From: Oikopleura dioica
Lineage: Eukaryota; Animalia; Chordata
Assembly (NCBI GenBank): GCA_907165135.1
Contig: OU015567.1
Span: forward strand, 6,758,001 to 6,822,000
DNA length: 64,000 nt
Direction: 5' to 3'
Part shown: in pieces, positions 2,261 through 38,641 of the stretch
Layout: each line of letters begins with the position of its first letter
How positions within the stretch are numbered: position 1 is the stretch's first letter
Translations under genes and position numbers: made by a program
Notes under the pieces: generated by a model
Databases searched by the model: none
The model's input: the letters and a program-made list of their open reading frames with translations, nothing else
What the model was told of the DNA's origin: nothing

Positions 2261-2968
2261 ATGGAGAGGCTCTATCGGACAAATGGGAGAAAGTGCTTTA
2301 TTGGAATTTTCCCCAAAGATTTTTCAAGCGTTAGTGGAACTGGAGGACGACTAGAGAATTTGTTCAATAATAAGGATGATGTAAGATGTCTTTTTGAATG
2401 AAAAAGGAGACGTGTTTTTAAGGAAACCTTGCGTACTTCTTTCAAGTCTCAAGGATACTACACAAAACTCTCCCAGAAGAATCAGATCAAAACTCGCCGG
2501 GTTGTCGAATTCATCGAGCAAAACGCCGCGGAGTTCGAAACAGTTGGAGACGTTTCAAGAGTTGTCGTCTACATCTGTACTCATGGCTTCTCGTCCCAAT
2601 ACGGACAACATCTGTATTTCAGCGATGGGCATATTTTGATGGACCACCTGCTACGCCCTCTTTATGATTGCCCTGGTTTGGTGAATGTTCCACTTTTGGT
2701 CATTCTGCACTCCTGCCGCAAGTACAAGGAAGATTCAAGCATTGCTGAAGCAAGTTACAGATTTGCAGAAAATCGTCAAATCTGGCAAGATCGAGTTGCC
2801 CACTCAAAAGTCGATGTCGGTTTCGTCTTTTCAGCCGACGAGAATAAATATGCGCTTACTTCTTTCAATGGAACTTCTGATTTTGCAAGCAAGCTGGTTC
2901 ACGAATTCGAGAACAACGATGATATCTTCCGCGCTACGTCTTGTTTGGGGCTTCGGCACTCCTATCGG
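2261..2968 (+). CDS. Caspase-like domain 1 (5' half of a gene interrupted by the foldback element)
   Basis: ATG 2261, GT-AG intron 2381-2422; VYICTHGFS (catalytic His-Gly) and LVILHSCRK (catalytic Cys); p10-like VGFVFSADENKYALT...SDFASKL. Confidence 0.8.
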
Positions 2969-4061
2969 TAGGCTTACCGCGGTGTTTTCTATTTTTCAGG
3001 CTCTTTTGAAAAATCTCCCCATACTTTCAGAACATATGCATCAAGACAAGCCTTGAAAAACTGCACTTGCAGAATTTTCGATATGAGTCATCTTACCCCC
3101 TTTTTTGGGGGATTTTTAGCAAGAAAAAAAGCACTAGTTTGATTAGAAGCGGCTTTTGAGTGCGTGCTAGATCGATTTTGATAATTTGATGCCTACCATG
3201 TGAAAGATAAGCGCAAGATGCATCGATACATATGAAATTTATTATTGCGGAGTACTTCCTTCATATGATTCTAGAGCTCCAAAGTTGACGCAAGCAGCCA
3301 GATACGAAAATCCAATATTATCAACTTCTGATATAAGCATGCTATGATGATGTTTTATAGCTCAAATTGAAGCTTATAAATTACTGAACAAAATGGAGTG
3401 GTATTTTTGACCAGCCGGTTGTGCTTCCGGTTCGTCGCGGTTCATACCCGGAAATAGGTCAAAATGTAGAAATATGTATATCAAATGAATTAATTTTCAA
3501 CAGCGAATCTTTTGAACATATTCAGAAGTTCAACCGCCCGGTTATTATTGCGGTTCATGGTGGTTCATGGTGGTTCAAGCGCAGAAATGAACAAAATAGC
3601 AGCAATATGTATATCAAATTGAAACATAAATTAAGAACATTCATAAAATCATTTAATAAGCCCGAACCAACCGGTTGTTCTCCCGGTAAATGGCGGTTCC
3701 AAACGGTTCAAGCCGGTTCAAGCTAAAAACATGCTCAAAGTGGTTCAATATGGTTATCAAATGTATTCATTTACAATAGCAAAGCTTTCTAGCATATAAT
3801 GAAATTCAACCGCCCGGTTATTCTTGCGGTTCATGGTGGTTAATCGTGGTTCAAGCCCAGACATGAACAAAATAGCATCAATATGCATATCAAATTGAAT
3901 CTTGTATTAAGTACATTCGTCGAATCATTGAATAAGCCCAACCCAACCGGTAACTCTCGTGGAAAAAGAAGGTTTCTGACGGTTCAAGCCGGTTAAAGCC
4001 GAATATATGCTCAAAGTGGTTCAATATGTATATCGAATGAATGTTTATTAAAAAGCACGTA

Positions 4062-4288
4062 GTGTTTTGGGCCACCTTGGCGCTCGACTAAAAACAGCCA
4101 TATTTTTTGATTTTGTTTTTGTTTTCCTCAGTTAGCAATTTCACACTGCTCTCTCAACATAAAAGTATTCTTTTTCCTCTGTTCCTTTTCGTTCATATTT
4201 ACTTTATTATCCTGATGAAGTTTATCCAATAAACGAAAACGTTTGATACAAATCATATGATCTATTAACGAAGTCAACAAAAAAGATA
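4062..4288 (+). mobile_element. 227-bp insertion in the left foldback arm, probably a Penelope-like retroelement fragment
   Basis: Absent from the mirror arm; flanked by 13-bp direct repeat TAAAAAGCACGTA (4049-4061, 4289-4301); T-rich; contains a hammerhead motif. Confidence 0.6.
4208..4248 (+). ncRNA. Minimal type I hammerhead ribozyme motif
   Basis: TATC-CTGATGA-A-GTTTA-tccaa-TAAAC-GAAA-ACGT-TT-GATA: conserved core, 5-bp helix II, palindromic ACGT in place of helix III, 4-bp helix I. Confidence 0.55.
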
Positions 4289-4401
4289 TAAAAAGCACGT
4301 ATTTTGAAACTTTAACGAGATCCGGACGCGTGGTAAAACACTGAATATGTGCAAACCGCCCGGTTTTAATCGATTTTGTCTCTTTAAACGGGCAAACATA
4401 A

Positions 4402-6984
4402 GGGGAGGCAAGGCCCGTTTATACAATTCAGTCTGAGACGGGGCCAAGCCGACCCGAAGGAGAGGCCAGGCCCGTTTATACAATTCAGTCTGAGACGGGG
4501 CCAAGCCGACCCGAAGGGGAGGCCAGGCCCGTTCATACAATTCAGTCTGAACCGGGGCCAAGCCGACCCGAAGGGAGGCCAGGCCCGTTCGAACAATTCA
4601 GTCTGAGACGGGGCCAAGCCGACCCGAAGGGGAGGCGAGGCCCGTTCATACAATTCAGTCTGAGACGGGGCCAAGCCGACCCGAAGTGGAGGCCAGGCCC
4701 GTTCAAACAATTCAGTCTGAGACGGGGCCAAGCCGACCCGAAGGGGAGGCCAGGCCCGTTTATTCAATTCAGTCTGAGACGGGGCCAAGCCGACCCGAAG
4801 GGGAGGCCAGGTCTGTTTAAACGATTCAGTCTACGACGAGCCGAAGCCGACCCGAAGGGGAGACCAGGCCCGTTTATTCAATTCAGTCTGCGACGGGGCC
4901 AAGCCGACCCGAAGAGGAGGCAAGGCCCGTTTATTCAATTCAGTCTGCGACGGGGCCAAGCCGACCCGAAGGGGAGACCAGGCCCATTTATTCAATTCAG
5001 TCTGCGACGGGGCCAAGCCGACCCGAAGGGGAGGCCAGGTCCGTTTAAACGATTCAGTCTGCGACGAGCCGAAGCCGATTCGAAGGGGAGACCAGGCCCG
5101 TTCAAGCAATTCAGTCTGCGACGGGGCCAAGCCGACCCGAAGGGAGGCCAGGCCCGTTCATACAATTCAGTCTGAGACGGGGCCAAGCCGACCCGAAGGG
5201 AGGCCAGGCCCGTTCAAACAATTCAGTCTGAGACGGGGCCAAGCCGACCCGAAGGAGAGGCCAGGCCCGTTTATACAATTCAGTCTGAGACGGGGCCAAG
5301 CCGACCCGAAGGGGAGGCCAGGCCCGTTCATACAATTCAGTCTGAACCGGGGCCAAGCCGACCCGAAGGGAGGCCAGGCCCGTTCATACAATTCAGTCTG
5401 AACCGGGGCCAAGCCGACCCGAAGGGGAGGCCAGGCCCGTTCGAACAATTCAGTCTGAGACGGGGCCAAGCCGACCCGAAGGAGAGGCCAGGCCCGTTTA
5501 TACAATTCAGTCTGAGACGGGGCCAAGCCGACCCGAAGGGAGGCCAGGCCCGTTCATACAATTCAGTCTGAACCGGGGCCAAGCCGACCCGAAGGGAGGC
5601 CAGGCCCGTTCGAACAATTCAGTCTGAGACGGGGCCAAGCCGACCCGAAGGGAGACCAGGCCCGTTTATTCAATTCAGTCTGCGACGGAGCCAAGCCGAC
5701 CCGAAGAGGAGGCCAGGCCCGTTTATACAATTCAGTCTGAGACGGGGCCAAGCCGACCCCAAGGGGTGGCCAGGCCCATTCATACAATTCAGTCTGAGAT
5801 TGATGATACAATTCATCCGTCGCAGACTGAATCCTTTAAACGGACCTGGCCTCCCCTTCGGGTCGGCTTGAATAAGGGAGGCCAGGCCCGTTTATTCAAT
5901 TCAGTCTGAGACGGGGCCAAGCCGTCGCAGACTGAATTGAATAAACGGGCCTGGTCTCCCCTTCGGGTCGGCTTCGGCTCGTCGTAGACTGAATCGTTTA
6001 AACAGACCTGGCCTCCCCTTCGGGTCGGCTTGGCCCCGTCTCAGACTGAATTGAATAAACGGCCCTGGCCTCCCCTTCGGGTCGGCTTGGCCCCGTCTCA
6101 GACTGAATTGTATGAACGGGCCTTGCCTCCCCTTCGGGTCGGCTTGGCCCCGTCTCAGACTGAATTGTTTGAACGGGCCTGGTCTCCCTTCGGGTCGGCT
6201 TCGGCTCGTTGCAGACTGAATCGTTTAAACGGACCTGGCCTCCCCTTCGGGTCGGCTTGGCCCCTCTCAGACTGAATTGTTTGAACGGGCCTGGTCTCCC
6301 CTTCGGGTCGGCTTCGGCTCGTTGCAGACTGAATCGTTTAAACGGACCTGGCCTCCCCTTCGGGTCGGCTTGGCCCCGTCTCAGACTGAATTGAATAAAC
6401 GGGCCTGGCCTCCCTTCGGGTCGGCTTGGCCCCGTCTCAGACTGAATTGTTTGAACGGGCCTGGCCTCCACTTCGGGTCGGCTTGGCCCCGTCTCAGACT
6501 GAATTGTATGAACGGGCCTGGCCTCCCCTTCGGGTCGGCTTGGCCCCGTCTCAGACTGAATTGTATAAACGGGCCTGGCCTCCCCTTCGGGTCGGCTTGG
6601 CCCCGTCTCAGACTGAATTGTTTGAACGGGCCTGGTCTTCCCTTCGGGTCGGCTTCGGCTCGTTGCAGACTGAATCGTTTAAACGGACCTGGCCTCCCCT
6701 TCGGGTCGGCTTGGCCCCGTCTCAGACTGAATTGAATAAACGGGCCTGGCCTCCCCTTCGGGTCGGCTTGGCCCCGTCTCAGACTGAATTGTATGAACGG
6801 GCCTGGCCTCCCCTTCGGGTCGGCTTGGCCTCGTCTCAGACTGAATTGTATAAACGGGCCTGGCCTCCCCTTCGGGTCGGCTTGGCCCCGTCGCAGACTG
6901 AATTGAATAAATGGGCCTTGCCTCCCCTTCGGGTCGGCTTGGCCCCGTCTCAGACTGAATTGTATAAACGGGCCTTGCCTCCCC
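4402..6984. repeat. 57-bp GC-rich tandem satellite in two head-to-head arrays (~24 units forward, ~18-19 reverse)
   Basis: Unit GGGGAGGCCAGGCCCGTTTATACAATTCAGTCTGAGACGGGGCCAAGCCGACCCGAA; orientation switches at ~5800-5924; gives 19-aa periodic spurious ORFs. Confidence 0.95.
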
Positions 6985-8179
6985 TTATGTTTGCCCGTTT
7001 AAAGAGACAAAATCGATTAAAACCGGGCGGTTTGCACATATTCAGTGTTTTACCACGCGTCCGGATCTCGTTAAAGTTTCAAAATACGTGCTTTTTAATA
7101 AACATTCATTCGATATACATATTGAACCACTTTGAGCATATATTCGGCTTTAACCGGCTTGAACCGTCAGAAACCTTCTTTTTCCACGAGAGTTACCGGT
7201 TGGGTTGGGCTTATTCAATGATTCGACGAATGTACTTAATACAAGATTCAATTTGATATGCATATTGATGCTATTTTGTTCATGTCTGGGCTTGAACCAC
7301 GATTAACCACCATGAACCGCAAGAATAACCGGGCGGTTGAATTTCATTATATGCTAGAAAGCTTTGCTATTGTAAATGAATACATTTGATAACCATATTG
7401 AACCACTTTGAGCATGTTTTTAGCTTGAACCGGCTTGAACCGTTTGGAACCGCCATTTACCGGGAGAACAACCGGTTGGTTCGGGCTTATTAAATGATTT
7501 TATGAATGTTCTTAATTTATGTTTCAATTTGATATACATATTGCTGCTATTTTGTTCATTTCTGCGCTTGAACCACCATGAACCACCATGAACCGCAATA
7601 ATAACCGGGCGGTTGAACTTCTGAATATGTTCAAAAGATTCGCTGTTGAAAATTAATTCATTTGATATACATATTTCTACATTTTGACCTATTTCCGGGT
7701 ATGAACCGCGACGAACCGGAAGCACAACCGGCTGGTCAAAAAATACCACTCCATTTTGTTCAGTAATTTATAAGCTTCAATTTGAGCTATAAAACATCAT
7801 CATAGCATGCTTATATCAGAAGTTGATAATGTTGGATTTTCGTATCTGGCTGCTTGCGTCAACTTTGGAGCTCTAGAATCATATGAAGGAAGTACTCCGC
7901 AATAATAAATTTCATATGTATCGATGCATCTTGCGCTTATCTTTCACATGGTAGGCATCAAATTATCAAAATCGATCTAGCACGCACTCAAAAGCCGCTT
8001 CTAATCAAACTAGTGCTTTTTTTCTTGCTAAACATCCCCCAAAAAAGGGGGTAAGATGACTCATATCGAAAATTCTGCAAGTGCAGTTTTTCAAGGCTTG
8101 TCTTGATGCATATGTTCTGAAAGTATGGGGAGATTTTTCAAAAGAACCTTGAAAATCGAAAAACACCGCGGTAAGCCTA

Positions 8180-9183
8180 CCTATCGGGAAAGATTCAACG
8201 ACCCTGAAGAAGAGGGTGGCACGGATCAGTTCTATCCCCATTCAAAGAGGAAGAAAGCTGCAATTATAATCACATTGGGCGAGTTTGACAGAGAGAGAGA
8301 TTTCAAAAATGCTGATGTTGAAAGAGAAGGTAAAGCTTTTTTTGAAATTTCTTTGGGACCTATGATTTTTGTAGAAATGAAGAAGCTTGTAAAACAAATG
8401 GACTACGACGTCATTGCTTCCAACAAGACCTATATTACGCTTGAAAGTTGCCAGAAATTCATCCACAATTTGATCGAAAATAGCTTCCAGCACGGCCACG
8501 AATTCAATTCAATCATGCTCTATTTGAAAACACACGGGAGCTGGGGAAAGAAGGGCCAGATTGTCCATTTTTCGAACGATACGCAAATTCCGCTTCTTGA
8601 CTTGCTCCAGCCCTTCAACCAAGGACCTCTTAGAGGTAAAAAATAGAACTCCATCTAGTACTGCTAATCTTCTCTTTTCAGCAATTCCGAAAGCTATCTT
8701 CGTTGAAGCCTGCCAGGGAGAAACGAAAGAGACGGAGGGCATTAGATTAGGTCAGACGCACCTAGGAAGCAGCGAGCCTCGACATCATATGCTGAATACA
8801 ATTTTCTTCAAAGCAACAACAGAGAGAACTCTCTCTGTTACGCCAGAAGATCCTGAAGGACTCTCGCCTTTTACTGAAGGAACGGGGTCATTGAAATTTA
8901 CTTTTGGATATATAGAAATTTTTCATTTAAAAAACCTCGGCAAGCTCTGAAAGACATCGTCAACGAAGCACTTCTCAACGACGAAGACATCAACGCCTGG
9001 GACTTGTCGTGCAAACTCACGGAGAAAATGTCGTCAATAGAACCAGTCAGGCACCCGGCTCCAGAACGACTACATATTAATCCAGAATACGCTCTGAAAT
9101 TCGATAAATTCCTCCTGTGCCAAACGGATACGACGCTCACCAAAAACCTCAAAATCTTCAACAACACTCGATATCCTTATTAG
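8180..9183 (+). CDS. Caspase-like domain 2 (3' half of the interrupted gene)
   Basis: FYPHSKRKKAAIII, LYLKTHGSW (His), intron 8636-8681, IPKAIFVEACQG (Cys), SPFTE, GA-AG intron 8880-8944, ...TTLTKNLKIF...PY stop at 9181-9183. No ATG of its own after the insertion. Confidence 0.82.
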
Positions 9184-9340
9184 TGATTATTAGTTGATTT
9201 ACTGCTGCATAAAGTTCAATCTTCTTCAATCATTCTGTATTATTTTCTGTATACTTGAAAATTGCTAATTCCGATAAAAGTTCCAATAAATTTCATTCTC
9301 GATTCTTGATAACAACGATTTGAAAATAAGTCTAGTTAAG

Positions 9341-10454
9341 ATGGGAGACTACTACGACGTTCGCGGAATGAAGAGAATTCTAGCGATCTCGGTGGGCGAG
9401 TTCAACGCTCTTGACCCACTTCCGAACAGTCAAATTGATAAGGTAGGGGAAATGTGAGTGCTGAGGCTAAAACTGAATCCAGGAGCTCATCTTGAGGACG
9501 TTTTCCAGGCTCGGTTTTCGACCGACGCAGGAAAAAGAAAACACCTTGACAGCTTTGGACGCAACGAAGTTGATCGCCAAATTCTGTCAAAAGTTCGAGT
9601 CCGAAATGCCTATCAAGCCGATGAAATGCCTCGCTATCTACCTCAAGTCCCACGGCGGCATTGACAAGAAGGGAACAGTCGTGTACTTTAGGGATCAAAT
9701 GGTGCCGCTTTGGGATTTGTTGGACCCGATTCTGAAGCACCCGTGCTTAGAGGGAGTGCCCAAAATAGTCATCTTCGAAGCCTGCCGGTAATTAAGAGTG
9801 CGAATTCGTAACTCATGAAAAATAGAGGCCAGAATGCGCAATTCCGCAGAGCAGGGAACGATGGAGCGAAGAATGAAAACCCTAGAATGCCAGTTCACAG
9901 GAGAGTGGACACCATTCTTTTGCCGCCTCGCCAGAGGGAGAGTATGCCTACACCTGCGTCGATGAGAAAGCATCGCCATTTACGGAAACCTTCTGTGAAG
10001 CTCTTGATGAATGTCCAAGGTTAGAGGATTCAATATATTTTACATGGCAACAAGGCTCTTCTTTTTAGTCAAGACGTCTACGACCTCTCTCACACGATCG
10101 TAGAACGACTGAGACACAAACCAATTCTAATGACTGACGGAGACACTCCAATCCAGTACTTCATGGCGCCCTGCACTGAGACGAGTCTCACTAAACGACT
10201 ACGGTTGTACACTCCCAGGTTCAGTTCACGAGAAAAAGCAGTAATTTCAACTGATCGCTTTTAGTAAACAAAGCAATGGATACATGCCCGCTGCTGGTTT
10301 TCAAAGAGCCGCTTCAACTTCCAGTATGGACGATCAATTGTCTTCATTGATGGAACAAATCAAATATCTGCAAGGAGAACGCGAGAAACTGATCACTGAG
10401 AATCAGAATCTCCAACTTGATCTCAACAATCTACGGCGAAATACTTCAGCGTGA
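9341..10454 (+). CDS. Prodomain-less caspase-like protease 3 with C-terminal leucine zipper; one -1 frameshift in a T run at ~9917-9921
   Basis: MGDYYDVRGMKRILAIS, IYLKSHGG, VPKIVIFEACR|G, AASPEGEYAY, SPFTETF, TSLTKRLRL; intron 10219-10264 leads in frame to a heptad-Leu exon. Confidence 0.82.
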
Positions 10455-10780
10455 AGCCTTCAACTCTTACAATCGCTCTGTAAAGAATTTTTTGATAAAA
10501 AATATTGTGCCTTCTGTTCAACAGATTAAGTTAAAACTCTTTTACTGACCTTTCTACTTCAACTCACAATCATCGAGCAGATGCAGTAGATTCTCTGCAA
10601 CCTTATTATCTCTCTATCTCTTCGGATGCAATCCCATTCATTTACTGTCTTGATGGATGTCTGTATTATAGCCGATTTTATTCCGAAAGTTCCCATACTT
10701 CTTTATATTTCGACTTCCCACTTCGAAATTTGAGTTTGAATTGAATTAATTCAGCCCTATTAACCACTTTGCTTCCAGAA

Positions 10781-11731
10781 ATGGATGAGGAGAAGTACTG
10801 GTATGATACCGACACGTCTCAAGATGAAAGCATAAAGAGGCTGTTAGCAATCTCAATTGGCGATTTTCAGAACGAATGGCTACAAAGCCTGCCATCAGCA
10901 GTTATAGATAGGGTTCGTTTTTCGTTCACAGTGGAGTAATCATAGAATGGTTTTAGGAGCGAGTCGTTCGGACATTTTCAAAGCTCAATTTTCGCCCTAC
11001 GCAAGAACGCTTGTCAATGCTGACGAAGGCCGACGGGCGGAAGTTGATTCTCAAGTTCCGTGAGAAATTCAAAGACGGAATCGAGACTAAATGCTTGGTG
11101 ATTTATCTAAAATCTCATGGTGGACTTCATCCTCACAAAGGCACGATGATATATTTTTCGGATGAGGCAATGCCCCTTTGGGATTTGCTTGAGCCGCTCT
11201 TGCAATTGCCACAATTGCAGGGAGTGCCCAAAATGGTCATTTACGAGGCTTGCAGGTAAAACCAAATCCAACTTCCGGGCTCAAAAGTAAAATATTCAGA
11301 GGCGAAAATGCTCAATATATTACTGCAGGAGTCGCCACACCAACAACTCCAGTTGCATATGTCCATCGTCGAATCGATACTATTTTATTCGCGGCTTCAC
11401 CTGAAGCTGAAATGGCTGTCGCTGGTTATGAGAATGAGGTGTGTTCTCCTTTTACTGATGCTCTCTGCAAAACACTGTTGGAAAATAAAAGGAACGGGAT
11501 CGTCATCGTCTTTTCTCGACTAGTACTGTAAGTATGATATTCTGATCCCAATCAAGCCAGGATGTGTTTGATTTGGGCATAAAAGTCACCAATGACCTCC
11601 GAAAAGCGAATTTACCAGTGAGGGAGGCAGATGGCACGATCCACGCATGGGCACTGGCTCCTGTGATGGAGTCGTGTTTGACGAAACACCTCCGACTGAT
11701 GCATCCAAATGAGGAAGCAAAGTATGGCTGA
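10781..11731 (+). CDS. Prodomain-less caspase-like protease 4 (close paralogue of 3)
   Basis: IKRLLAISIGDF, IYLKSHGG, VPKMVIYEACR|G, ILFAASPE, SPFTDAL, ESCLTKHLRL; intron positions match protease 3. Confidence 0.85.
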
Positions 11732-13024: not shown

Positions 13025-14900
13025 CTAGAAGCAGGCAGTGAAAAAGGCTAGAGGCTCATCATCAGGCCAGATTTGTTTGTTTTAACTTTGAGAAGCTTGA
13101 CATCCAGCTCAGCTCTTAGATCTCGGTAATTTATCTTTTTTTTTGGATCATCACGTTTCATGAAATTACTACTTTCTTAAAAAGATGATCCGTTCCAGCG
13201 TTGTAAACTTGACGAACTGGCCGGATCCATGTCCCATATGAGATGGAACCTGGCGAAGAGCTGTTGGGCAAGGATCTTCCTCGATTGTTGTATTCGCCTC
13301 TAGGCCCGCTATTCCTGACAATCCAGGCATCTATTGACGGGATAGAATGAACCTTTTTAATGCAAAATACAATACGGACACTTGCTGACAAGACGCTATG
13401 AATACTTAAACTTAATGAACCCTTTTCTATTGCTAAACCGTCCCCAAGTCGCTTCAAAGTCTTTCTCGGCCAATTTCTGTCCATCGCCGAGTACAGTCAG
13501 CGTCCACTGGACGTCTATCTGACTATGGCCAGAGTCAATTGACAGATGCAAGTAAATCCCGAGCCAGCGACACCTGAACGATTTTTTTTATATTGGCGAA
13601 ATAAATCTTAATCCTAATCAACCTGTCTGCCGCGCTGTATTCGTTGCAGTATTCCAGCCACATTGGCACGCTGGCCATAGAGAACGTGTTCGAAGCCACT
13701 GAAACAGTTACAGTAAGAAACTGCCCTTAATCGTGCATCTTAAAATTGGCCAAAAGGTTTGTGGAAAAACCTATCAATTTAATATTTCATTCGACCCCTT
13801 TTTCGGAAGAAATTCTAAGCTAAGATCAATTGAGAGACTCTAATTAGACACGAGCTCGATCGAAAATAAAGGTTCATTTGGTTTTTATTGTCGAATAGAG
13901 AATAATAAGAAGCGCTGGAGAATAATCAAAATAGAAGCTCACCAGAATATTTGACGGCGACCAGATTGACATCGAGATCAAAGGAGATTTTCTTTTCGCA
14001 TAAGCGCTTTCGGATCATTCTTTTTCAAGGTTTCTTATTGTTTAATACTCGACTGATAATCAGGTCTAAGAGAACGCTCCTGTATCGCCGAACGAGCTCT
14101 GCTTCAATACATCCTTGAGGAATCGGCGCTGAATCTTCTGGGAAGCGAAATTTGTCGAGCAAAATCAAAGAGAGAACGGTGTCTTCATCCTCGAGCTTTG
14201 GAAAATCGTCAAGTAAGCAACAAAGAGCATCGTTCAAGTCGCTCGTTGTAGCTTTGCTAATCCCTTCTTTGTAAACCTCCAACAGGCGCGTTTCCAACAA
14301 GTGCTCGGTCACCATCATTAATTGCAAAACCTCGACCGGTTGATGGGACATTTTGCTTTTCAACGCGTCAATTATGCTTTCTTGTAGCTTCTCGTTGTCG
14401 ATAAAATGCGTGAAGTCAAAGAGCTTGATTAGCTCCAACGTCGAGGGATTCCGAGACAGGCCATAAATAAAATCGCCGAATAACTTGAGAATATTTATAT
14501 CGAAATATTTGAATTCGACGATTTTTCTGTTTTCGAATTCTCGCTGTAAATAATTTTTCTCTGGGCTTTGGATAAATAAAAGTATGATCGGCCCAAGCCA
14601 GACGACTTCCGAAGACTTTTAGGTGATCCCAAAATGATTTTTAACCCGGCAAAGATAATTTTTGAGACATTCTCTTTGTTGATTTCAATCCATAAGAACT
14701 AATTTGGCCTTCTTTATATCTCTCTTTTTCATCTTCGACAATATCTAGCAACATGTTTCTATCGAGCATTTTTGCTTCGGGAAGACAATTTGTAAGGGGA
14801 AATTTTGAATGTTGATTTTTCAGGGTTGGAGAGGATATACATTTCTGCTAAGCTCAGGGCAAGAACGTGCGTTGGAGCGCTGCCAGCCCCGTGCCCATCT
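13025..14900 (-). CDS. BTB/POZ - BACK-like - MATH-like protein, multi-exon, boundaries approximate
   Basis: VEFKYFDINILKLFGDFIYG (BTB C-terminal helices), helical region in ORF 14025-14438, and SNTFSMASVPMWLEY/WLGIYLHL/VQWTLTVL/TWG..FI (MATH-like strands). Confidence 0.55.
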
Positions 14901-15324: not shown

Positions 15325-17835
15325 TCAATAACTAACCTCTTGCTGCACTGTTTTTTCTTCTTCATTTCCTTTTTGCAAAACGCTGTCAATGGGCTTTGAA
15401 TCATCAAAAACTTCGGAATATTTGATAGTCTGTGGGACCCCGAGCTCGTCATAGATTGTAAGAGTATTTCTATGGTAACAAGGAAGATGATTTAGCTTCA
15501 ACAAACATTCTCTATCTTCGATATCAGATTTCTCGAACAGTTCAATGATTTCTTTTGGTAATGGTTTGTGAGTGAGAGTGATCGAATAAGCCTGTGGAAT
15601 CAGGTACCATTCGTTCGTTTTCATCTCAGCAAGGTTTTCATTTACGAGACGCATGAATTTTCCATCTGCATCAGAGTAGATGAAACACTGTTTATCAGGA
15701 CAATATTCCATCATTTCGTCGGCAGCATAATAGGACCTTGATTTTGGGATTTTGAGCACAGGTGTGTCAACCGAGACTTGTGTATTTTGAAGAATGTACT
15801 CGTCCTTTTCAATTCTATCTAGCACCATTTGGTGAAAGTATACCTCGTTCGACGATGGGTTCAAACGAGCAGCAGTAACAGTAAGAGGACGAGTGAAAAT
15901 GAAATTTTCGTTGAGAAGAACTACATGTACATGTTTTGAAGTCATTAATTTTTCGTTTTTCCTTACCTTGTTCACTTGTAAATGTTGCAGATAAGATCGG
16001 TTTTTGTGAAGCACCAGCTTTATTTTTCGAGGAACAAAGACTTCTTAGGATATCCCAGCCACTTGGATGCATAATAGTTTCTGTTGACAGGCGATCAAGG
16101 AGAAGCTCAATTTCAGTGACTTGTAAGTCCTTTTCTTTCTCAACCGGGTTCAAGTTTAACCCGGAAAGACTCCTCGGATAAATGACCATCGTCAAGACTG
16201 TTAAAATTTTCTCAAGAGTGAACTCGTTTTTGGTGTCTTCAAATCCAAGATCAGTTTTCATTGCATGTTTTATCAAAGTTGCTACTGAGATTGGCACGCA
16301 AAGATCCGTTTCTTTTTGGTCGAGAAAGTGTCTCGTCAAATTTGTCATGTTTTCAGCAACGGATTTGTCCATGACTCTTTTCAAAGAAGACATTTTCCTT
16401 GATTTTGTAATATTTTCATCATCCAAGCATAGGCTAGAAATCGTGCTCGCAATGGAGACAATGGATTTAGTATTTCTCATATCAGAAGGGTTAGGACCAT
16501 CTGGGCTTTTTCTGTCAATCAGCCATTCTGCATTACAATCCTAGAAAGATTATTTTCAGAAAGAAAAAACAAATTTTTTATCAGATCAAACCTTCAATAT
16601 TTGTTTGATTGACTCTTTTTCGTCTTTTTTTATAGGTTTGTACATAAGAGTCCACGCCGTTTTCCAATCACAGAAAATGAGCGTCCATAAATTTATTTCA
16701 GGCACAGTAGTATCTCGTCCAGATAATGACAAGAGCTGGTAAGAGGAAGAAAATCCTGGGGTTCCACGTTCTTATTCAATTTTAAAAAATTATTTTTTGA
16801 GTTAACTTACTTAGATTTTGCGCGCTTGCGAATTGATTACCAATTCTCGCATAACCCATCAATTGGAAAAATTCTCTTCCCGACCAGCCATAATATTTTG
16901 AATTCATGCAGTCAACTGTACCGAAATCTATTATTTTGCAAACGCCTTCAGAAATCAGAATATTTTCTGGTTTCAAATCATGATGGTTAATGCCAATATC
17001 TTCGAGGTATTTGTAGCCATTCAGTATTCCGATAGCAATTTTCTTTCGTTCTTCTATATCTATGAGTTCGTTCTTCAAAAGCTCTCTAAGATTTGTATCG
17101 CATTTTTCCATTATAGTTATCCATCCAAGACAGTCGCTGAAAGTTTCATCTTCTTCGAAGTAAAACCCGAAATGAGCGTAATGCTTGATTACATTTTCGT
17201 GGTACGGAATAATTGTCATTGGAGTGTTCTCTTCGTCTATTTTTTCGCTCCTTTCTGCAGAGATTTTCGCGATCTCAAAGTCTTCAATTTTTTATCATTC
17301 TTTGTTTTGCTGACGATTTACCTGATGAAAGTGATAAATTCGCCTCTATATTAAGCTCAAAATTTTCCGTGAATAAAAATGGATCAAAGGGCTGGATCCG
17401 AACAGCGACCTCGAGGTCATCGAACTTGTCGCTAAAGACAATTGCTTCGCCTCCTTCTGCCAAGATTTTGGTCGACTCATCATAAGACCAAGCTCCAGTT
17501 TCTTCCTTTAAATCAGAATAATAGTGCATCTTATCTTTTAATTCCGGACATTTCTTGAGAATAGCAATTTGATATGGTGTCATCTTTACAATACGGATAT
17601 TGAGACGCTCGATATGTTTAATATATAACTGCAGATTGTGTGCTGTAAAAACCACAGCAAACCAGCCGGAATATAGATAATAATTCTCTCTTCCAAACAT
17701 TCTATCAACTGACAAGAGCAAACGACACAGGTTCGTTCTGCTCGAAGTTCTCGACAAACCCTGCTTGTCTGTAGTTGTCCACCATTTTATCAACTTGTCT
17801 CTGCTGAGCTGTTCTGGCTGAATAGGAGGACTCAT
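15325..17835 (-). CDS. Divergent protein kinase fused to a C-terminal papain-like (clan CA) cysteine protease domain
   Basis: Kinase: LAEGGEAIV, VAVRI, HENVI, HHDLKPENIL, IIDFG, GTPGF. Protease: DQKETDLCVPIS (Gln..Cys spacing of papain), FHQMVLD (His), YILQNT (Asn). Four short introns. Confidence 0.75.
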
Positions 17836-18042: not shown

Positions 18043-21000
18043 TTAGTTTTCGTTTTTAAGCTTGAGTTCGTTCATGAACTGAATTGTACAGAGGGAACTT
18101 ATTACATCATCAGTAACGTTGGAAAGGTCTTCGAAGTTAGATATGCGCTTGTAGCCAAAGTTGAGCGGAGAGGAAGCCATTTGCACGAGCTCGTTTTCAT
18201 TGGCATCGCCAATTCCAATCGCCATTACTGCCGACTTTGATTTGAGATCGCGCGCTGATGCAGAAATATCATCTTGCGATTCGCCGTCGGTAATGACCAG
18301 CGTCACTGTTGGAACTTCCCTTCTAGCGCCGTATGTTGGGTTGAGAAGATAATCAGCAGCGTAGCCGAGAGCTTTGCCTGTCCGAGTTCCAGAGCCGGAG
18401 TAGTTTATTGCGGAGATGGCGGCGAGAATTTCAGATTTTGTGTTGAAAGTATCGAACCAAAGGACTGGTGAGACTTGGGAGTTGTATCGTAGAACAGCAA
18501 TCTAAAAGGAAATATGAAAAAACGGCTAGAAGAAAAGGGCTTACATGAGTGAGGGTTTCACTGATCGTGAAATTGCTGACAATATCTCCGACGAAAGAAG
18601 TGATGAGGTCGAAATTCTCCTCGCCGATCGACGAAGATGAGTCGATAATAAAAGCCAGGTCCACAGCAACATTATCTTCGCAGGGAACAAAACTGTCGAA
18701 GACGCAAAACTTCAACCTGTCAACAAGCTGGTTCACCAGCTTGATCAAATTATCTTCAAAAAGTGACATCAGACTGACAAATTCAAGAGGAACGGAGTTG
18801 CCGTCGTCGATGATCTGAATTAAAGAGGAGATTAGCCGACTTGAACTTTCGAAGTTGAACTTACCGGAGGACCGATGAGATCAGCTTTTTCGAGTTGAAT
18901 AAACTGCGCAACAAAGTTGAAGAAGAGTGGATTGGGCAAGTCCGAGTTTTGGATTTGAATAATTGACGTGGGTCTTGAATTTTCTCTGGCAGCGAAGAAA
19001 TCGTCCAGATTCATGTTTTCGACGGACTCGTCAGCGAATGCATCATCGAAGGAGTTATCCGAGGAGGAGTCGTAGATGATTCGAACGTTTTCGCTGTCAA
19101 CAAGTTCAGCAAACTTGAAAATTGTTTTTTCCCCGATAAGAAGTCTTTCGACAACGTTTTCAATGAATTTCTTGATGTACGAGCGCTCATTTCTATCGAC
19201 AAGTGGATCTGTAAGAATGAAGATGTTCGATTCGTCTGAGCATTTTGGCACACATTGTGGCGGTGGAGTGAGCCATTCTCCATAGACTGGGTCGCAGAGA
19301 GCTTCAGATCGGCCAATTAGGTAGTGAGAGTTTATGCAGGAGAACTCGCAGGCGTTGTTGAAGCAAGATGTGATAGTTGTTTCGTTATCGACTGGGCAAG
19401 ATTTCGGACTGAAGGAGTCTCCGCGGGCGAAGTCGAAGTCTGCGAAAGATGTTGTTTCTGATTCAGTTGTGGTTGTTGTGGGAAGTTCCGTCGACGTTGA
19501 AGTAGTTGTAGTAGTCGAAGTCGTTGTCTGTGGAGTTGTCGTGGTCGTGGTTGTGGTGGAGGTCGTGAAAGTGGTGGTGGTGGTGATGGTCGTCGTCGTT
19601 GTCGTCGTGGTGGTGGTGGTAGTGGAGGTAGTCGTTGTCGTTGACGTCGTTGTTGGTGTTGATGTAGTCGTGGAAGTTTTTGTTGTAGTTGAAGTTGTGC
19701 TAGTTGTTGTCGTTGTAGTAAGAGTGCTAGTTGTTGACTTAGCAGTTGAAGTTGTTGTTGACGTTGATGTTATAATAGCGGTTGTTTCTAAAGCTTTTGA
19801 GATTGATGTAGTGCTTGTTTGAGACGTTGTAGTCGTAGTTGTAGATGTAGTAGAAGTTGTTGTTGTTTCACATTGTCTTGGTGTTCTGCAAGGGAAACGT
19901 CTAACCGAGTCTCCAGGACAGTCACCAACGCCTTCTCCACAAGTTCGTTTCCGAAGTCTTGTTCCGATTCCACAAGTGACTGAGCATTCGCTTTCATTCG
20001 TCCAATCTGACCACGTTGCGCACTTGTCCACTTCGCATTGCTGAGCTTCTGCCGTTTCGCCTTTGCAGTCGCTGCCAGGAGAGCCGTTCATACACGTTCT
20101 CTCTCGAGTTTGAACTCCTGGACCACAAGAGGTCGAGCAACTTCCCCAAACAGTCCATTCAGCCCAGAAAGAACAAAGAGGGATTTTCTCGCAATCTCGA
20201 GTTTCTAGTGATTCCCCTTTACAATCGTCGGTATTTCCATTTTGACATGTGCGGGAGCGAGTTTGCGTCGTTTCATCTTCTTTCTTTCTACAACCAGAAG
20301 GACAGACGGACCAGTCAGACCACTGGCTAAAGTAAGGGCAAGGGACCAACACGCATTTTTTAATTTGCTCAGTTTGCCCATCGCAAGTGTCAGTTTTTTT
20401 GCCGAGATGATCCAAGCAGAGTCTTGATCTAGACTTTGTCCCCCGCCCACAGGTTTTTGAACACTCCGACCACTGCGACCAATTTTCGAACTTCGGGCAG
20501 ACGAACGAGTTGCAAGTTATAAATGACTCGTCTTCGACTTTATCCAAGATTTCTTTCGGGATACCAACGAATCTTCCGCCGCCGCAAGAAGTGCTGCATT
20601 GAAGAGATCCACTAGCCCAGCTTGACCATTCGGACCAGATTATTTCCTCGGAGCTTTTCAGGAAAACTGGGACACATTCTCTTTCGATCACACATTCTCT
20701 GCTTTCTTCCCATTTCCCGGGGCAAGATAGAGACCCTTGCTCAGCTCCACGGCAACGCCTTTGTCTTCGGGTCACTCCTTCTCCACATGTTGCAGAGCAT
20801 GGCTCCCAGCTCGACCAACTCGACCAGCCAGGTGCTTCCACACAAGCTTCTTTCATTGCTGCGGCAATCTTCTTTGCAGTTCTCGGAAGTTGATAAGCGT
20901 TGTTTATTCGAATGGCAAGTCGCTCACTAGGATCGGAAGCCATTTGATTGAGAACTCCCATAGGAATGTCAGTCCCGATTCCGATGGCAACAACAGCTAC

Positions 21001-24000
21001 GTATCGATTCTTGAGACGAGCAGCTGCTTTTTCAGCTTCTTGAGAGGGAACTCCAGAAGTTACGATGACAAGAATATCTGGAGCGTAGTAGCGATCACCT
21101 CCGTAGCCGTGCAAGAAAACGTTCGAGCCAATGAAATCGATTGCTTTCGCTGAAAAAATCAGTTGAAATCATGGAAGAAAATGCTGAGTCAATACCTGTA
21201 TTGAGTCCTGCGCCGGTTTTAGCGAGAGGATTATCCTGAATAAGTTGCTTGATGTATTTATTCGAGAGCGAATCGCGCAGGTCCCATTTTATCTGCGGCT
21301 CCGAGTGATGCTCCACTACTGCAAGTCGCGTCTCATTCAATCCTAATTAAGCAAATTTGAATAATCTCGTATCAATTAAGGGACCCCGCCGACCGAGCTC
21401 CGCGCGCGCTTCTCGCCCTTTTTCACTCTCACTCTTCAGCTGGTTTAATTTTTTCGATTATAGTTATTTTTTGCACACTAACTAAACTTTTTATGCTCTT
21501 TCAAATACATTTCTTAAAATTTTCATAGCTTATCGTTACGCTGAGTTTGGGCGAAAACATTAGCGCTCTCTTTCAAGTGTACATAAGTCCTCGAAATATT
21601 TGGATTGACACTTCGAGACTGCCCTCATTGAAAAGCCCGTGCCTTCTTGCATAAGGCTTACTTATTGAGATTTCCTGGAAGCGATTATTTATCTGATTAT
21701 CGTGGGATTAATGCGGGTTACCTGGAGCGCTCGGCGTGAAACACGGCTATTTTACACTGTTGGCGCGGGATTCCCGCTGCGCTGGTCAGAAGAACCTTTA
21801 TAAACCGCTCGATTACGAGAGTTGCATAAATTTCTATTACATCTCAATAAGTAAGCCTTATGCAAGAAGGCACGGGCTTTTCAATGAGGGCAGTCTCGAA
21901 GTGTCAATCCAAATATTTCGAGGACTTATGTACACTTGAAAGAGAGCGCTAATGTTTTCGCCCAAACTCAGCGTAACGATAAGCTATGAAAATTTTAAGA
22001 AATGTATTTGAAAGAGCATAAAAAGTTTAGTTAGTGTGCAAAAAATAACTATAATCGAAAAAATTAAACCAGCTGAAGAGTGAGAGTGAAAAAGGGCGAG
22101 AAGCGCGCGCGGAGCTCGGTCGGCGGGGTCCCTTAAAGGTCGAGTTACCTATGTTAAAATTCCGCAAAAGTGCAGTTATGAAATCAGCATAGTTCTCAAG
22201 ATGGCCGGGTGTGATGTCGTTGGAAGTGTCGAAAAGAAGCACAATGTCGGATTTCGGACAAACTGAAATATAAATTAAGCTTTCAAAAAATAAGAAAAAA
22301 TATGATGAGATGAGAATGTTTTGCGTTTTGTCAATTTAGAAAATCACCACTGTTATGTCAGTAACTGCACCAATCACCAAATGAATACCCTCAATCATTT
22401 TATTTTTTGCAACTGGTCGGTCGGGAAACAAGCCATAGTTGTTAATTATGTTTTCGAATCTTGTCCGAACATCGCCGTCAAAGAATGTGTTTGTATTTTG
22501 AAGATCAATGTCGATGTTGATTTCATTATTGTCACAAGGTGGAAGGTCGCATGACTTCTCCATGTCTAGCTTTATGAAATCAGTGCCGTTTGTGTAGCAG
22601 TGGCCAGCGTCGATATCATCTTGATCGCAGGCGTTCCAGCCAAACATGATCCCATTTCCTTTTCCACAAGTTACAGCGTTTAATTCTGGTATGCATGTTC
22701 GTAGAAACTCAGCTAGTAGTTTATCATCTTCCTTTAGCTCTTGAATTTTTGTCCATTCTACGTTGCCATTGAGTCTTCTGCTCGATCTCTCTTCACTTTC
22801 AATTTCTTCGGAGCTCTCAAAAAAGCCATCTTTTTCTTCGAATTTTTGGACTTCTTCGGCTTCTTCTTCCTCAAATTCATAAATCGGCTCTTCAACCTCC
22901 TCAAAACTAGAACCTTCGTCAAACAAGGAATTGGGAATTCTTTTTGAAGCTTCCAATCTATTTTGAGCTTCTTCATTCGCTTCGAATGTGACATCAGAGA
23001 CCAATATGCTCGGACAAGGTTTTCCAATGTTACAAAATTGTCTTTCTACGAGCTCTCCATTACAGATCGTTCCTTCTGTGCTTTCTGTAAGAGCATCGGT
23101 GCAGGATCGTTGCCGAAGCTTTCTAGGCTTGGTCGACATTGTAAATCCATCGAAGCAAGTATGCGTGCATGTTGTCCATTCAGACCATTCGGAGAGAATA
23201 TCACAGGGCTCGTTTTCAAAGCATTCCCGCTCTTCAACTGCTTTTTCTTCTGGGTCTTTTTCGAGGCATTCATCTTCACCGCCGTTTTTGCAATCTCGGA
23301 CTCTCTTTTGAATTCCATCGCCACAAGGAGTCGAGCAATCCGACCACTGCGTCCAGAGCGCCCACTCGATACATGGAGGCAAGTCACAAGATTTTTGCTT
23401 GAAGCTTTTATCATCGCAGCCTTCATCGCCAACTCGTCCGTTGATACATCGTCTCGCAGAAGTGGTCATTTGGTTTCCGCAAATTTCATTGCACTCTGTC
23501 CACTCAGACCATTCTTCCCAGTATGGGCATTCTTGCTCGTTGCAGGGATCATTTTGCGAAGGTTCTTCTGTGCATCCCGCTACTCCGAATTCGCCATTCA
23601 AACATTCCCGAACACGAGATTTTGCACCAGTACCACAAGATTTAGTACAAGCGCTCCAGTCTTCCCATTGCGCCCATTTTGGACAGAGTCCGCGGAAACA
23701 GTCTTGGAATTCGATTCCTTCGCCTGGGCATTCTCCGATTTCTCCAACACACTCTCTCGTTCTTGATCTTTTTCCATTCCCACAGGTGACTCCACATTCG
23801 CTGAAATCAGACCACTGGCTCCACTCTTTACAAGCTTCAGTGTTGCATTTTTCGTTGTCGACAACTTCTCCATTGCAGCCGTTGTCGCCCGGTTTACCAA
23901 AGAGGCACTGTCGATCACGAATGCGTACGCCACCGTTGCATGTTTGAGAACATTCCTTCCACTCGCTCCATTCATCAAAACGCGGGCATTCCCTAGAATT

Positions 24001-34585: not shown

Positions 34586-35009
34586 TTTCAATCATTTTAC
34601 AAGAAGATCCGGCGCATTTTATAATATCAAGCCGACAAATTGTGGGAGCCGCTCGGGGGTAAGTGGCCTAGCTAGTATCATCAACTGCTCCATTCATCCG
34701 AATGAATAACAACGTTTTCAACAGCCCCGTTCAAGGGCAGAATTTCCCACTCTCTCTCTTTCTCCACTTTATCTTTATCTTCCCACCTGACAAAGAAAAC
34801 AATAATTCTTTTTCATAAACTGAAGTTCAATGAAAAAATAGTCATCTAAAAAAGCTGCGAGAGAGTTAAATTTCTTATTGAACTCTTCAATTATTACTTC
34901 AATTTAGATAACAGTGTGGCAAAACATATTGTAAAAAATCCACTTCGAATATTCATTTAGAATTTTTTATATATTTTCTCTCAATCAATGACTGGTGCAA
35001 ACAGATTAT

Positions 35010-35200
35010 TTCTTTTTATTCTGGAATGAGCTGAATCGTGTAAGCAGTAGGAAAGAGGTACCACTTGTTCTCCTCCATGTTTCCGAACTCTTCGTTCACC
35101 AATTTGCATTTTATTCCATCTTCTTCCAAAACGGTGCTTGAGGTCGTGTTGTTTATGTAACAGATGTGTTCGTGGTTGGTGTAGTAGGTAGGTAAAATTC
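35010..35200 (-). pseudogene. 3' terminal fragment of a kinase-papain paralogue
   Basis: ...CKLVNEEFGNMEENKWYLFPTAYTIQLIPE* aligns with LVNENLAEMKTNEWYLIPQAYSITL of the 15325-17835 gene. Confidence 0.65.
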
Positions 35201-35658
35201 AAAATCAAAATCATTGAATGAGTGTGCGCTTCGCGCTTGAATTGAAGGAAACTACTTCTTGGTATACTTTATTGCATATTCTGTCCAAAATAATAAGAGT
35301 TACGAAATTTAAAATAATTTTTATAGTAAAAAAAATCTGAATTTTTGTAACTGCGTTACAAAATTGTAACGGCGTTACAAAATTTTGCATTTCATGCACC
35401 CTACAATACACTCAAAAGGGTCGAGAGGCCGGGTTTTTTTAAACGATTTCATTCTCATATTTTTAGTCAATTTACAATTGGCAAATCGGAAGTATTGAGT
35501 AATGGAAGATATATTCTTAGCAACCTTGAAGTTCATGAGGTACTGAGGAACAAACAGGGTCGTTTCATTCTTAAATCCATTATAATGGGTCGTTGGGGGG
35601 AGGAGGGTTTAGTTATCAAAAAGGTTAGAAGAGAGCAGAGGAACAAAAAAGGTTCGAC

Positions 35659-35855
35659 CCCCACGAGCAGACAGAAACCGAAGTCATCTTTGCACGCCGT
35701 GAGCAAGCCTTTCCTTTTCTGAAAAAGGGGTTTTAAGAAAGAGGGGGTGAAGGGAAGAGAAAGAGGGGGCGTAAAGAAGAGAGGTTGAAAAAGGTCGGGC
35801 CCCCACGAGCAGACAGAAATCGAAGTCTTCTTTGCACGCCGTGAGCAAGCCTTTC
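35659..35855. repeat. Two 55-bp direct repeats spaced 142 bp
   Basis: CCCCACGAGCAGACAGAAA(C/T)CGAAGTC(A/T)TCTTTGCACGCCGTGAGCAAGCCTTTC at 35659-35713 and 35801-35855. Confidence 0.85.
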
Positions 35856-36057
35856 ATTTTTCGAGATATAAAGGGTTTTAAAGGGGGTCTGATCATCAAA
35901 CTTTTATGAAGAAGTTGGTCCTAAATTAAAGGTTGATCCTGATATTATTTCAGTGATTTATTTTCTTGATTATCCCCTGAGAGAATTTGATTCTTCATTT
36001 AAAAATAGACCAAACTCGGTCTCCAATCAGAATACGAGAAAAGGGGCGCTAAAGACA

Positions 36058-36290
36058 AAAATCCACTCCATCCGCTCAAAATCCACTCCATCCACTCAAA
36101 ATCCACTCCATCCACTCAAAATCCACTCCAAAGTAGATTTCACAGGTTGGAGTGGAGTGGAGCGAATGAGTGGATACTAAAAATATAGGCTGAGGGAGTG
36201 GAGTGGAGTGGATCCACTCCGCTCACGCTCCACTCCACTCCGCTCAAAATCCACTCCATCGCTCAGCAAAATTGGAACCCTGGGCTCCAC
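36058..36290. repeat. CCACT/AGTGG-based 20-bp tandem repeats and hairpin; probable foldback/MITE fragment
   Basis: AAAATCCACTCCATCC(A/G)CTC x3-4, then GAGTGGAGTGGAGTGG...CCACTCCACTCC; ends ...GGAACCCTG. Confidence 0.6.
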
Positions 36291-36337
36291 ACTCCTAAAA
36301 AACCAAAAATTACAAAAAAGACAAATCAAGGGGGCGC

Positions 36338-36593: not shown

Positions 36594-36629
36594 ATCCTCC
36601 AAATCAAGCTCTTACTTCAACAATTTCAT

Positions 36630-37517
36630 CTATTGCTTTTCTTTGACGACTATCGAGTGGTTGGTAAAGAAGTGTCCACGCAGTTTTCCAATCGCAGAAA
36701 AGAAAATAATAAAGATTATATGCAAAATAACCATCTCCAGTCGCGCCTTGAGCATGAATACTGAATCCTGGCGTCCCAGCAGCTTCATTTTGTAAAAATT
36801 TAAATTCTCAAAAAACTTACCTAGGGCTAAACATTTTTTGTATTTTGATCCTCTTCTGGCGTACCCCATTCTTCGGTAGCCTTCTCGTCCGGTATCTTCC
36901 ATAACGAGCCCGAAGTCGATAATTTTCGGAATTCCACCAACAATCAAAATGTTTTCTAATTTCAGATCGCGATGCCAAATTCCACGACTCCACAAATATT
37001 CATGTCCATCCAAAATTCCACTCGCGATCTTCTTTCTAGTTTCTAGACCAATTTTTTCTTCCTTCAACAAACTCCTCAAATTCTCCTCTCCTTTTTCCAT
37101 GATCGTAATCCACCCCAAACAATCTTTTCTTTTCTCGTCTCTGCCGTGAAACAGCTCAATATTGACAAAGTTGTAAACAACGTTCTGATGGATGGCATTT
37201 GATTTTCGCACTCTGATGATCCTTCGTTTTCCGATTCTTCTTTTGCTGGTTCAAATTCTCAAAAAACCTTTAAAATATATTTCAAGCCCGTTTTAACCTT
37301 TCGAAAGATGTATCTCACAAGTAAAACCGTCATTTTCAAATTCCTCGGTAAAAATAAACGGATCAAAAACCTGCACTCGCACAACTACATCAAAACCGTC
37401 GAAATTTTCAGCTAGAACAATCGCTTCTCCTCCTCGCGAAAGCAGCTTCTCTTCCAAATCTTCATCTAATTGCCAATCACCAGACTCTTCCTTCAAGGAA
37501 GTTCCTTGATCTCCCAT
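36630..37517 (-). pseudogene. Kinase half of a second kinase-papain gene; papain core exon missing
   Basis: LLSRGGEAIV, VVVRVQ, DCLGWITIMEK, WHRDLKLENIL, IIDFG, GTPGF, CDWKTAWTL; same intron positions as the 15325-17835 gene; downstream sequence is repeats until the 35010-35200 tail. Confidence 0.7.
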
Positions 37518-38087: not shown

Positions 38088-38290
38088 TCAACTGCTTGAT
38101 TTTACAACATATTCTGGAATAAGCTGGATGGTGTAAGCAGTAGGATGATGAAATTACTTGTTTTCCTCCATGTTTCCGAACTCTTCGTTCACCAATTTAC
38201 ATTTTATTCCGTCATCTTCGAAGATCGTGCTTGATGTCCTGTTGTTAATGCGCCAGATGTGACCGTAGTCGGTGTAGTATAGATTCTTTT
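38088..38290 (-). pseudogene. 3' fragment of a third kinase-papain paralogue with an in-frame stop
   Basis: VLRIPQKNLYY...CKLVNEEFGNMEENK*FHHPTAYTIQLIPE (TAA where the paralogue has TGG). Confidence 0.7.
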
Positions 38291-38641
38291 GCGGAATGCG
38301 GAGGACTAAAAGAGGCTCATTTAATAGTTGCATGAAATACGATTCTCCTTCATATGATGCTAATATTTGATCAAATGACTTGAGCCAAAGCCAATTTATA
38401 ATTAACGAAAACTAGAAAAAACTCATTTCTATGGATCTTGCATGAATGTTTATAAATAATTATAGTTTGCCAAACGTTTTTACTTGGAAACTGCGAGCCG
38501 CCTGCAATCTTGGTTTTCTTGAAAAAAAAACAAACAATACCGAAATATGGCCGAAATTATGATTTTTTCAAAGAAAGTTTTTCAGAGGAAATCGCCGAAC
38601 AGAGAAAATTTGAATCCAATTTGAAATTTTGACAGTCGAGC

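Follow-up and report, generated by a model that had tools for sequence, protein, structure and literature searches.

A protein-kinase domain joined to a very divergent, predicted papain-fold domain in a multigene family of Oikopleura

The DNA analysed here (the window) is a stretch of 64,000 nt from Oikopleura dioica (assembly GCA_907165135.1, contig OU015567.1, forward-strand positions 6,758,001 to 6,822,000); all positions given below are those of the window. On its minus strand, at 17835..15325, lies a gene whose five exons join into a single reading frame of 769 amino acids (aa), encoding a protein-kinase domain followed by a domain predicted to have the papain fold of clan CA cysteine peptidases. 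Both this architecture and this fold class are assigned with high confidence. The locus is intact and under selective constraint, and belongs to a multigene family that is known only from Oikopleura, an appendicularian tunicate. Its product begins with a family-specific N-terminal region, which is followed in order by a eukaryotic protein-kinase domain, a conserved linker, a cysteine-peptidase domain that is assigned to clan CA and is very divergent, and a tail peculiar to this copy. An intact, constrained family member encoding a predicted thiol hydrolase, with a regulatory or substrate-recruiting kinase-like domain, is considered to be the best explanation overall, and is given slightly better than an even chance. 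Catalytic activity of the protease domain is predicted more tentatively, at somewhat below an even chance.

The locus had been described previously in a reading of the DNA without database searches (the sequence-only reading), which proposed an atypical kinase fused to a papain-fold cysteine protease with a complete Cys-His-Asn triad. Every motif quoted in that reading was found on the minus strand between 15325 and 17835 (Table 1). The motifs are spread over four exons and three reading frames, and are united in one open reading frame (ORF) only by way of introns 1–4, of 67, 40, 51 and 46 nt, all of which are GT-AG. The exons were joined in a local model of 769 aa that served solely to check frames and coordinates; homology searches were run exon by exon. 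Two donors of exon 2, at 16810 and 16840, are in phase; the short form, ending at 16840, was rejected in favour of 16810, since family homology continues across 'GNQFASAQNL'. The Gln, Cys, His and Asn residues are present in the order and spacing of papain, as had been claimed: Gln454 lies exactly six residues before Cys460, and Asn616 lies 16 residues after His600. The corresponding catalytic residues of papain are Gln19/Cys25 and His159/Asn175.

Comparison with related sequences indicates that the kinase–protease fusion is real, because in contig L001 the kinase end and the protease domain share one uninterrupted ORF of 367 aa, which spans the C-lobe motif FLFCDWKTAW of the kinase and all of the protease-like domain. 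Just upstream of this ORF is a kinase ORF with a Pfam match, and downstream of it is a GST gene. The order is repeated in a divergent relative, the marine metagenome contig L003, where the protease-like domain comes after a kinase ORF. All 12 full-length O. dioica gene models retrieved (638–795 aa) have the kinase motifs as well as the Gln/Cys motif, and nine of them have the His/Asn motif too. The family motif FCDWKTAW is carried by exon 3 of the window copy. The proposal of an atypical kinase and a papain-fold domain in one polypeptide is thus upheld by the L001 ORF, the layout of L003 and the 12 gene models.

The papain-like region lies within the last ~330 residues of the protein, for which no Pfam model and no sequence of a solved structure gave a match. 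A model of this region was made with AlphaFold2 (AF2) and alignment A2 on the equivalent domain of a paralogue, P0062 (residues 63–369, 42–54% identical to exons 4 and 5 of the window copy), and not on the window protein. The model had a mean predicted local distance difference test score (pLDDT) of 64 and a predicted template modelling score (pTM) of 0.67, with the core (residues 75–307) mostly at 70–90. When it was compared with 48,161 PDB representatives using VIA-align, all of the top 50 rows were clan CA papain-fold peptidases, including xylellain (Z 9.8), cathepsin B (9.4), Der p 1 (9.3) and the C39 domains of PCAT1 and ComA (~9). The top 50 rows were likewise all clan CA when VIA-align was applied to Foldseek's own top chains, with ficin and ervatamin at Z 9.9, cathepsin S at 9.8, and papain (1pad) at 8.9 over 152 residues. 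These Z values are moderately above the stated VIA-align background of 7–8; the fold call is considered convincing because the lists are completely uniform and the whole core is covered. The weak rows returned by Foldseek itself were cathepsin B, C39 and NTAQ1, and an ESM Atlas shape search with the same model gave C39, C39_2, C1, C70 and BtrH_N clusters, the majority being C39 or C39_2.

It is apparent that the predicted fold of the P0062 domain is papain-like, as the sequence-only reading had anticipated: the model has the two-lobe α + β fold of clan CA. The candidate catalytic residues of the model follow the clan CA order, (Gln) Cys, His and Asn; as in that clan, the Cys (Cys77) opens the central helix (77–92), and His218 and Asn234 are situated on successive strands of a hairpin. 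The alignment ranges (model residue 69 to chain residue 17 in papain, and 70 to 22 in cathepsin B) place model Gln71/Cys77 on Gln19/Cys25 of papain and Gln23/Cys29 of cathepsin B, provided that the first nine residues are ungapped. The linker between the kinase and protease domains, of ~70 aa, is conserved and was modelled with low confidence.

A HMMER scan with exon 4 produced 59 matches among 1.84 billion protein representatives. One of these, P0057, an ankyrin-repeat protein, was rejected as spurious; the other matches examined were family members, mostly short fragments. A profile search identified 232 proteins, and all of the 120 listed came from O. dioica or were marine metagenome fragments; on the evidence of these 120, the family is known only from O. 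dioica and from such fragments. An hmmalign alignment of 200 fetched family sequences was used to count conserved residues. The Gln was kept in 156 of 160 sequences, the Cys in 156/160 (the other four having Ser), the His in 40/42 and the Asn in 38/41. More than 150 family sequences share these residues at 93–98% while otherwise differing by 50–65%. The retention of the four residues in 93–98% of the family, together with the papain-like predicted fold, argues that the motif set is more than a chance occurrence.

Additional data came from metagenome contig L002, an orthologue with 81% DNA identity to the window copy. For exon 4, the ratio of nonsynonymous to synonymous substitution rates (dN/dS) was 0.16, with a dS of 0.57, over 525 nt; for exon 3 the ratio was 0.21. 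The introns are 64–71% identical, with indels, and the splice sites of intron 3 are kept despite an indel of 9 nt. Because dN/dS is 0.16–0.21 while the introns diverge faster, the lineage of the window copy is judged to be under purifying selection. In L003 (positions 116–2412), the most divergent member, which may derive from another appendicularian, the protease motif (PHAVTLYFEDQNEFVIKNS) was observed to be much nearer to the papain signature than are those of the O. dioica copies.

Exon 2 matched the Pfam model PF00069 (Pkinase) with an E value of 8.2e-15 and 55.3 bits (cut-off 31.7), and in PDB there were hits to 548 kinase sequences at E ≤ 0.001, the best of them (p38, JNK and PknG, ~1e-9) being generic. 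The catalytic-loop Asp, Lys and Asn and the Asp of DFG are kept in the window protein, and HxDxKxxN and D[FY]G are present in all of the family members seen. In place of the β3 VAIK Lys, the window protein has Arg146, in VAVR, and in place of the APE motif it has GTPGFSSSY. The β3 Arg is invariant across 19 aligned family N-lobes, and was found in every O. dioica member seen. L003, by comparison, has a kinase of canonical appearance, with the β3 Lys (in AFKI), HLDLKLSN, DFG and GTPGFASPE. Since this most divergent relative has both AFKI and GTPGFASPE, the replacement of Lys by Arg and the absence of APE are both derived within the O. dioica clade. The kinase domain may be either a pseudokinase or an unusual kinase. 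A known counterpart is provided by mammalian KSR1/2, which have Arg in place of the β3 Lys. Pseudokinases of this type resemble the window kinase in keeping the catalytic loop and DFG along with Arg at the VAIK lysine; unlike it, they have no protease domain, and they have no specific sequence relationship to it (the best PDB matches being generic).

The N-terminal region, of ~120 aa, is family-specific and aligns to 18 family proteins, with GGEA, V, R and D invariant. An AF2 model of it (pLDDT 69) gave a best VIA Z of 4.8 among heterogeneous rows, and Foldseek returned nothing; rows resembling cystatin and latexin (Z 2.8) were rejected as noise. The absence of a signal peptide, noted in the sequence-only reading, was confirmed, in that the N-terminus of the window protein (MSPPIQPEQ...) contains no hydrophobic, signal-like stretch, and a cytosolic location is suggested for this copy. 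Many paralogues (P0190, P0191, P0192 and others; alignment A3) begin with 18–20 hydrophobic residues followed by basic residues, e.g. MLEFSILAILATCIAGMIQIA and MLEFSILAILATCIAGMIQIATSKRE. This stretch resembles a membrane anchor, and some family members may be membrane-anchored.

At the other end of the protein, a tail of ~80 aa extends past the usual end of the family, at 15564–15328 (82 aa when taken from 15573), and is unique to the window copy. It had no match among family members, Pfam models or PDB sequences, and searches of Pfam and PDB revealed no UBA or other ubiquitin-related domain. Its language-model features in the Atlas scored 0.96–0.97 to DUF3684 and DUF8348 clusters (eukaryotes, rotifers and fungi); recognition was low and had no Pfam support, so that this match is a lead only. 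A possible GT donor (GTTAGT) was observed 9 nt before the stop codon, and a further exon may lie beyond the tail.

Several observations weigh against the best explanation. Sequence methods link it to no peptidase family: exons 4 and 5 had no match to a Pfam model at E ≤ 1 (PF00112, Peptidase_C1, included), none was found for any of 25 family members at E ≤ 0.1, phmmer searches of PDB with exons 4 and 5 matched no sequence of a solved structure, and a profile of 19 sequences (alignment A2) found no peptidase in PDB. An ESM Atlas feature search with exon 4 gave scores of 0.85 or lower and was uninformative. As regards membership of MEROPS C1 in particular, neither the secretory signal peptide nor the inhibitory prodomain was detected, there being no hydrophobic N-terminus and no I29 match in the kinase and linker upstream. 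The confidence of the structural model is moderate (mean pLDDT 64), and Foldseek alone returned no row for it at E ≤ 0.001. Catalysis is not proved by conservation alone, given that YPRS and SGW, two motifs without a catalytic role, are kept as well as the triad is. Four family sequences have Ser in place of the Cys. Clan CA includes non-protease enzymes and inactive scaffolds, and no family member has a known enzymatic activity. Finally, no RNA reads were found on the window copy in three bulk oligo-dT runs and one single-cell run, of which 56–59% and ~4%, respectively, were read.

The three bulk runs did contain reads with partial matches of 90–95% at 16956–16997 and 17101–17132, two stretches of the kinase. 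These reads run on into unlike sequence that has a consistent consensus; they are therefore attributed to one or more related kinase genes that are transcribed, and not to the window copy.

These points bear on what kind of protein is encoded. An alternative to be weighed is that the papain-fold domain is active but is no conventional endopeptidase, being instead a deubiquitinase or ubiquitin-like-protein isopeptidase, an amidase, or an acyl- or transglutaminase-type transferase to which the kinase-like domain delivers substrates. Clan CA members of these kinds do occur in the same VIA lists at Z 6–8 (UfSP, ATG4, ZUFSP, phytochelatin synthase, the PeiR isopeptidase and a CdiA toxin), and the signal peptide, prodomain match and C1 sequence signature of classical papains are all absent from the window protein. 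The lists are headed, however, by endopeptidases of C1 and C39, the spacings (Gln-x5-Cys and His-x15-Asn) are those of papain, and the tail of the window copy has no UBA or ubiquitin-related domain; a non-endopeptidase is regarded as unlikely. Somewhat less credence still is given to the possibility that the window copy is a scaffold made up of a pseudokinase and a pseudoprotease, or a silent, recently decaying paralogue of a functional family. Its five open exons, its intact splice sites and its dN/dS of 0.16–0.21 against an orthologue at a dS of ~0.6, with introns that diverge faster, all argue otherwise, as does the retention of the four papain-type catalytic residues, the kinase Asp/Lys/Asn and DFG. 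A decaying copy would account for the lack of transcripts in the four RNA runs (which, as stated above, were read in part), for the change of the β3 Lys to Arg and the loss of APE, and for the unique tail of ~80 aa, which could reflect a lost stop codon; the neighbouring paralogues within the window, moreover, are clearly broken.

Two further explanations concern the gene as a unit, and each is considered extremely improbable. In one, the kinase and protease are two adjacent genes that were misjoined by the exon model. It is true that no cDNA reads of the window copy were seen in the runs examined, and that exons 3 and 4 are split by an intron of 51 nt, read-through of which would end exon 3 in a stop codon. 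The start of exon 4, however, is the final conserved segment of the kinase and linker (DCNAEWL...), and in all relatives this segment directly continues the kinase; the L001 ORF includes both FLFCDWKTAW and the complete protease domain; both splice sites of intron 3 are conserved in L002 despite the 9-nt indel; and neither a start codon context nor a promoter gap lies between the two parts. In the other, a transposable element carries the gene as cargo, or the gene has a functional link to a cluster of caspase-like genes 4 kb away. The family is indeed large, with copies both scattered and clustered across the genome, and the caspase-like cluster is present in the window (Table 1). Against this, a search of the flanks of the gene for terminal repeats of 18 nt or longer, direct or inverted, found none, the neighbours of its relatives are unrelated (GST in L001), and other genes or ORFs are situated between the gene and the caspases in a region of high gene density. 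The tie to the caspase cluster that the sequence-only reading had hinted at is accordingly unsupported.

The explanation favoured here remains that of an intact, constrained gene encoding a predicted thiol hydrolase and a kinase-like domain. The C-terminal domain would act as an active thiol hydrolase (peptidase or isopeptidase) by means of Cys460 and His600. The kinase-like domain would serve mainly as a nucleotide-binding regulatory or substrate-recruiting module, and not as a robust phosphotransferase, and both domains would act on cytosolic targets.

Among known systems, the papain family (MEROPS C1) is alike in fold to the model (Z 9–10, root-mean-square deviation 3.1–3.8 Å, 150–160 residues), and shares with the window protein the Gln six residues before the Cys and the Asn 16 residues after the His. 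In both, the Cys is at the start of the central helix and a strand of the form hydrophobic-x-x-(K/Q)-N-(S/T) is present. The window domain differs from the papain family in having no detectable sequence similarity, signal peptide, I29-type prodomain match or conserved disulphide pattern. It has Phe where the papain family has Trp following Asn-Ser, its sheet lobe has ~40 extra residues after the Asn in comparison with papain, and, unlike papain, it is fused to a kinase. The C39 and C39-like domains of bacteriocin ABC exporters (ComA, PCAT1) are statistically tied with the papain family, at Z 8.8–9.0 and a deviation of ~3.0 Å over 126–128 residues. Like the window domain, C39 is a cytosolic papain-fold domain fused to another enzymatic module; unlike it, C39 domains are bacterial and much smaller (~130–150 aa), the third residue of their triad is Asp, and the leaders that they cleave are of the double-glycine type; the two have no sequence similarity. 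Effectors of the AvrPphB/YopT type (C58) and other protease–kinase pairs also bring a papain-fold protease and a kinase together in signalling or defence. This likeness is a conceptual analogy only: there the protease is one protein and the kinase another, each from a different organism, whereas in the window they form one animal polypeptide.

The coordinates of the gene, its motifs and the related elements in the window are listed in Table 1. A decayed tandem paralogue was observed on the minus strand, spanning 34998–38366. In its kinase exons VVVRVQ, WHRDLKLEN and AAGTPGF are readable, and its N-terminal region contains stops in a three-frame reading. No match to exon 4 was found in it by tblastn, and the exon that would bear the Cys is replaced by repeat-rich sequence, with short tandem units, between 36600 and 35200. 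The exon 5-like fragment at its lower end is probably the remnant 3' end of this broken paralogue, and the second such fragment, which is interrupted by an in-frame stop, is a pseudogene piece as judged from its sequence.

Table 1. Features of the kinase–protease gene and of related elements in the window
Feature	Position	Strand	Details
Exon 1	17322..17835	minus	ATG at 17835, GT donor at 17321; N-terminal region and start of kinase N-lobe
Exon 2	16811..17254	minus	Kinase core; Pfam Pkinase match; GTAAGT donor at 16810
Exon 3	16592..16770	minus	Activation segment and C-lobe; AG acceptor 16772–16771, GT donor 16591
Exon 4	15967..16540	minus	Kinase end, ~70-aa linker, helical half of predicted papain-fold domain
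Exon 5	15325..15920	minus	β-sheet half of predicted papain-fold domain, and tail; AG acceptor 15922–15921
Stop codon	15327–15325	minus	
Gly-rich loop EGGEA	17457–17443	minus	Exon 1
Arg146 (in β3 VAVR)	17400–17398	minus	Exon 1
Catalytic loop HHDLKPEN	16985–16962	minus	Exon 2
DFG	16928–16920	minus	Exon 2
GTPGF	16765–16751	minus	Exon 3
Gln454	16318–16316	minus	Exon 4, within DQKETDLCVPIS
Cys460	16300–16298	minus	Exon 4, within DQKETDLCVPIS
YPRS	16180–16169	minus	Exon 4
SGW	16063–16055	minus	Exon 4
His600 (FHQMVLD)	15834–15832	minus	Exon 5
Asn616 (YILQNT)	15786–15784	minus	Exon 5
Last strand WYLIPQAYS		minus	Exon 5
Broken paralogue, kinase exons	36616..37496	minus	tblastn with exons 1–3, 41–57% identity
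Exon 5-like fragment, ...DGIKCKLVNEEFGNMEENKWYLFPTAYTIQLIPE	34998..35189	minus	tblastn with exon 5, 39% identity, E 1.8e-7
Second exon 5-like fragment	38121..38366	minus	tblastn with exon 5, E 4e-4; in-frame stop within '...MEENK*FHHPTAYTIQLIPE'
Caspase-like cluster	2261–11731		

Upstream of the gene, on the same strand, a large gene or ORF set was observed at 18043–21114, ~200 nt from the start codon. Inspection of its ORF translations by eye revealed VWA-like segments, repeats resembling thrombospondin type 1 and a long Thr/Ser-rich, mucin-like stretch. The short gap between genes of the same strand may be compatible with an Oikopleura operon and trans-splicing. A minus-strand ORF of 137 aa, at 14025–14438, lies ~900 nt downstream of the gene and had no Pfam match; it may be a separate gene or a further exon of the gene described here.

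A bolder proposal is that the family represents a class of appendicularian effectors, not recognised before, that would act in signalling or defence as single chains. In these, the kinase-like domain with Arg for Lys would gate a cytosolic papain-fold protease, through the binding of nucleotide or through residual phosphotransfer, and the family would have expanded and diversified to take the place, in this lineage, of pathways of innate immunity or cell death. It is thought improbable, and the terms 'switch' and 'defence', like the caspase link, are speculation.

Both folds are well known individually, and the peptidase domain has diverged so far that no family model detects it. Searches of the published literature found neither an account of this family nor one of any animal polypeptide that combines a kinase with a papain-fold peptidase. 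A Pfam or MEROPS family could be defined from alignment A2. The derived Lys-to-Arg change, set beside a relative of ancestral appearance, represents a natural experiment on a kinase becoming a regulatory module. Taken together, the presence of dozens of copies in a very compact chordate genome, the retention of the catalytic residues and the evidence of purifying selection argue that this family is likely to be important for the biology of Oikopleura.

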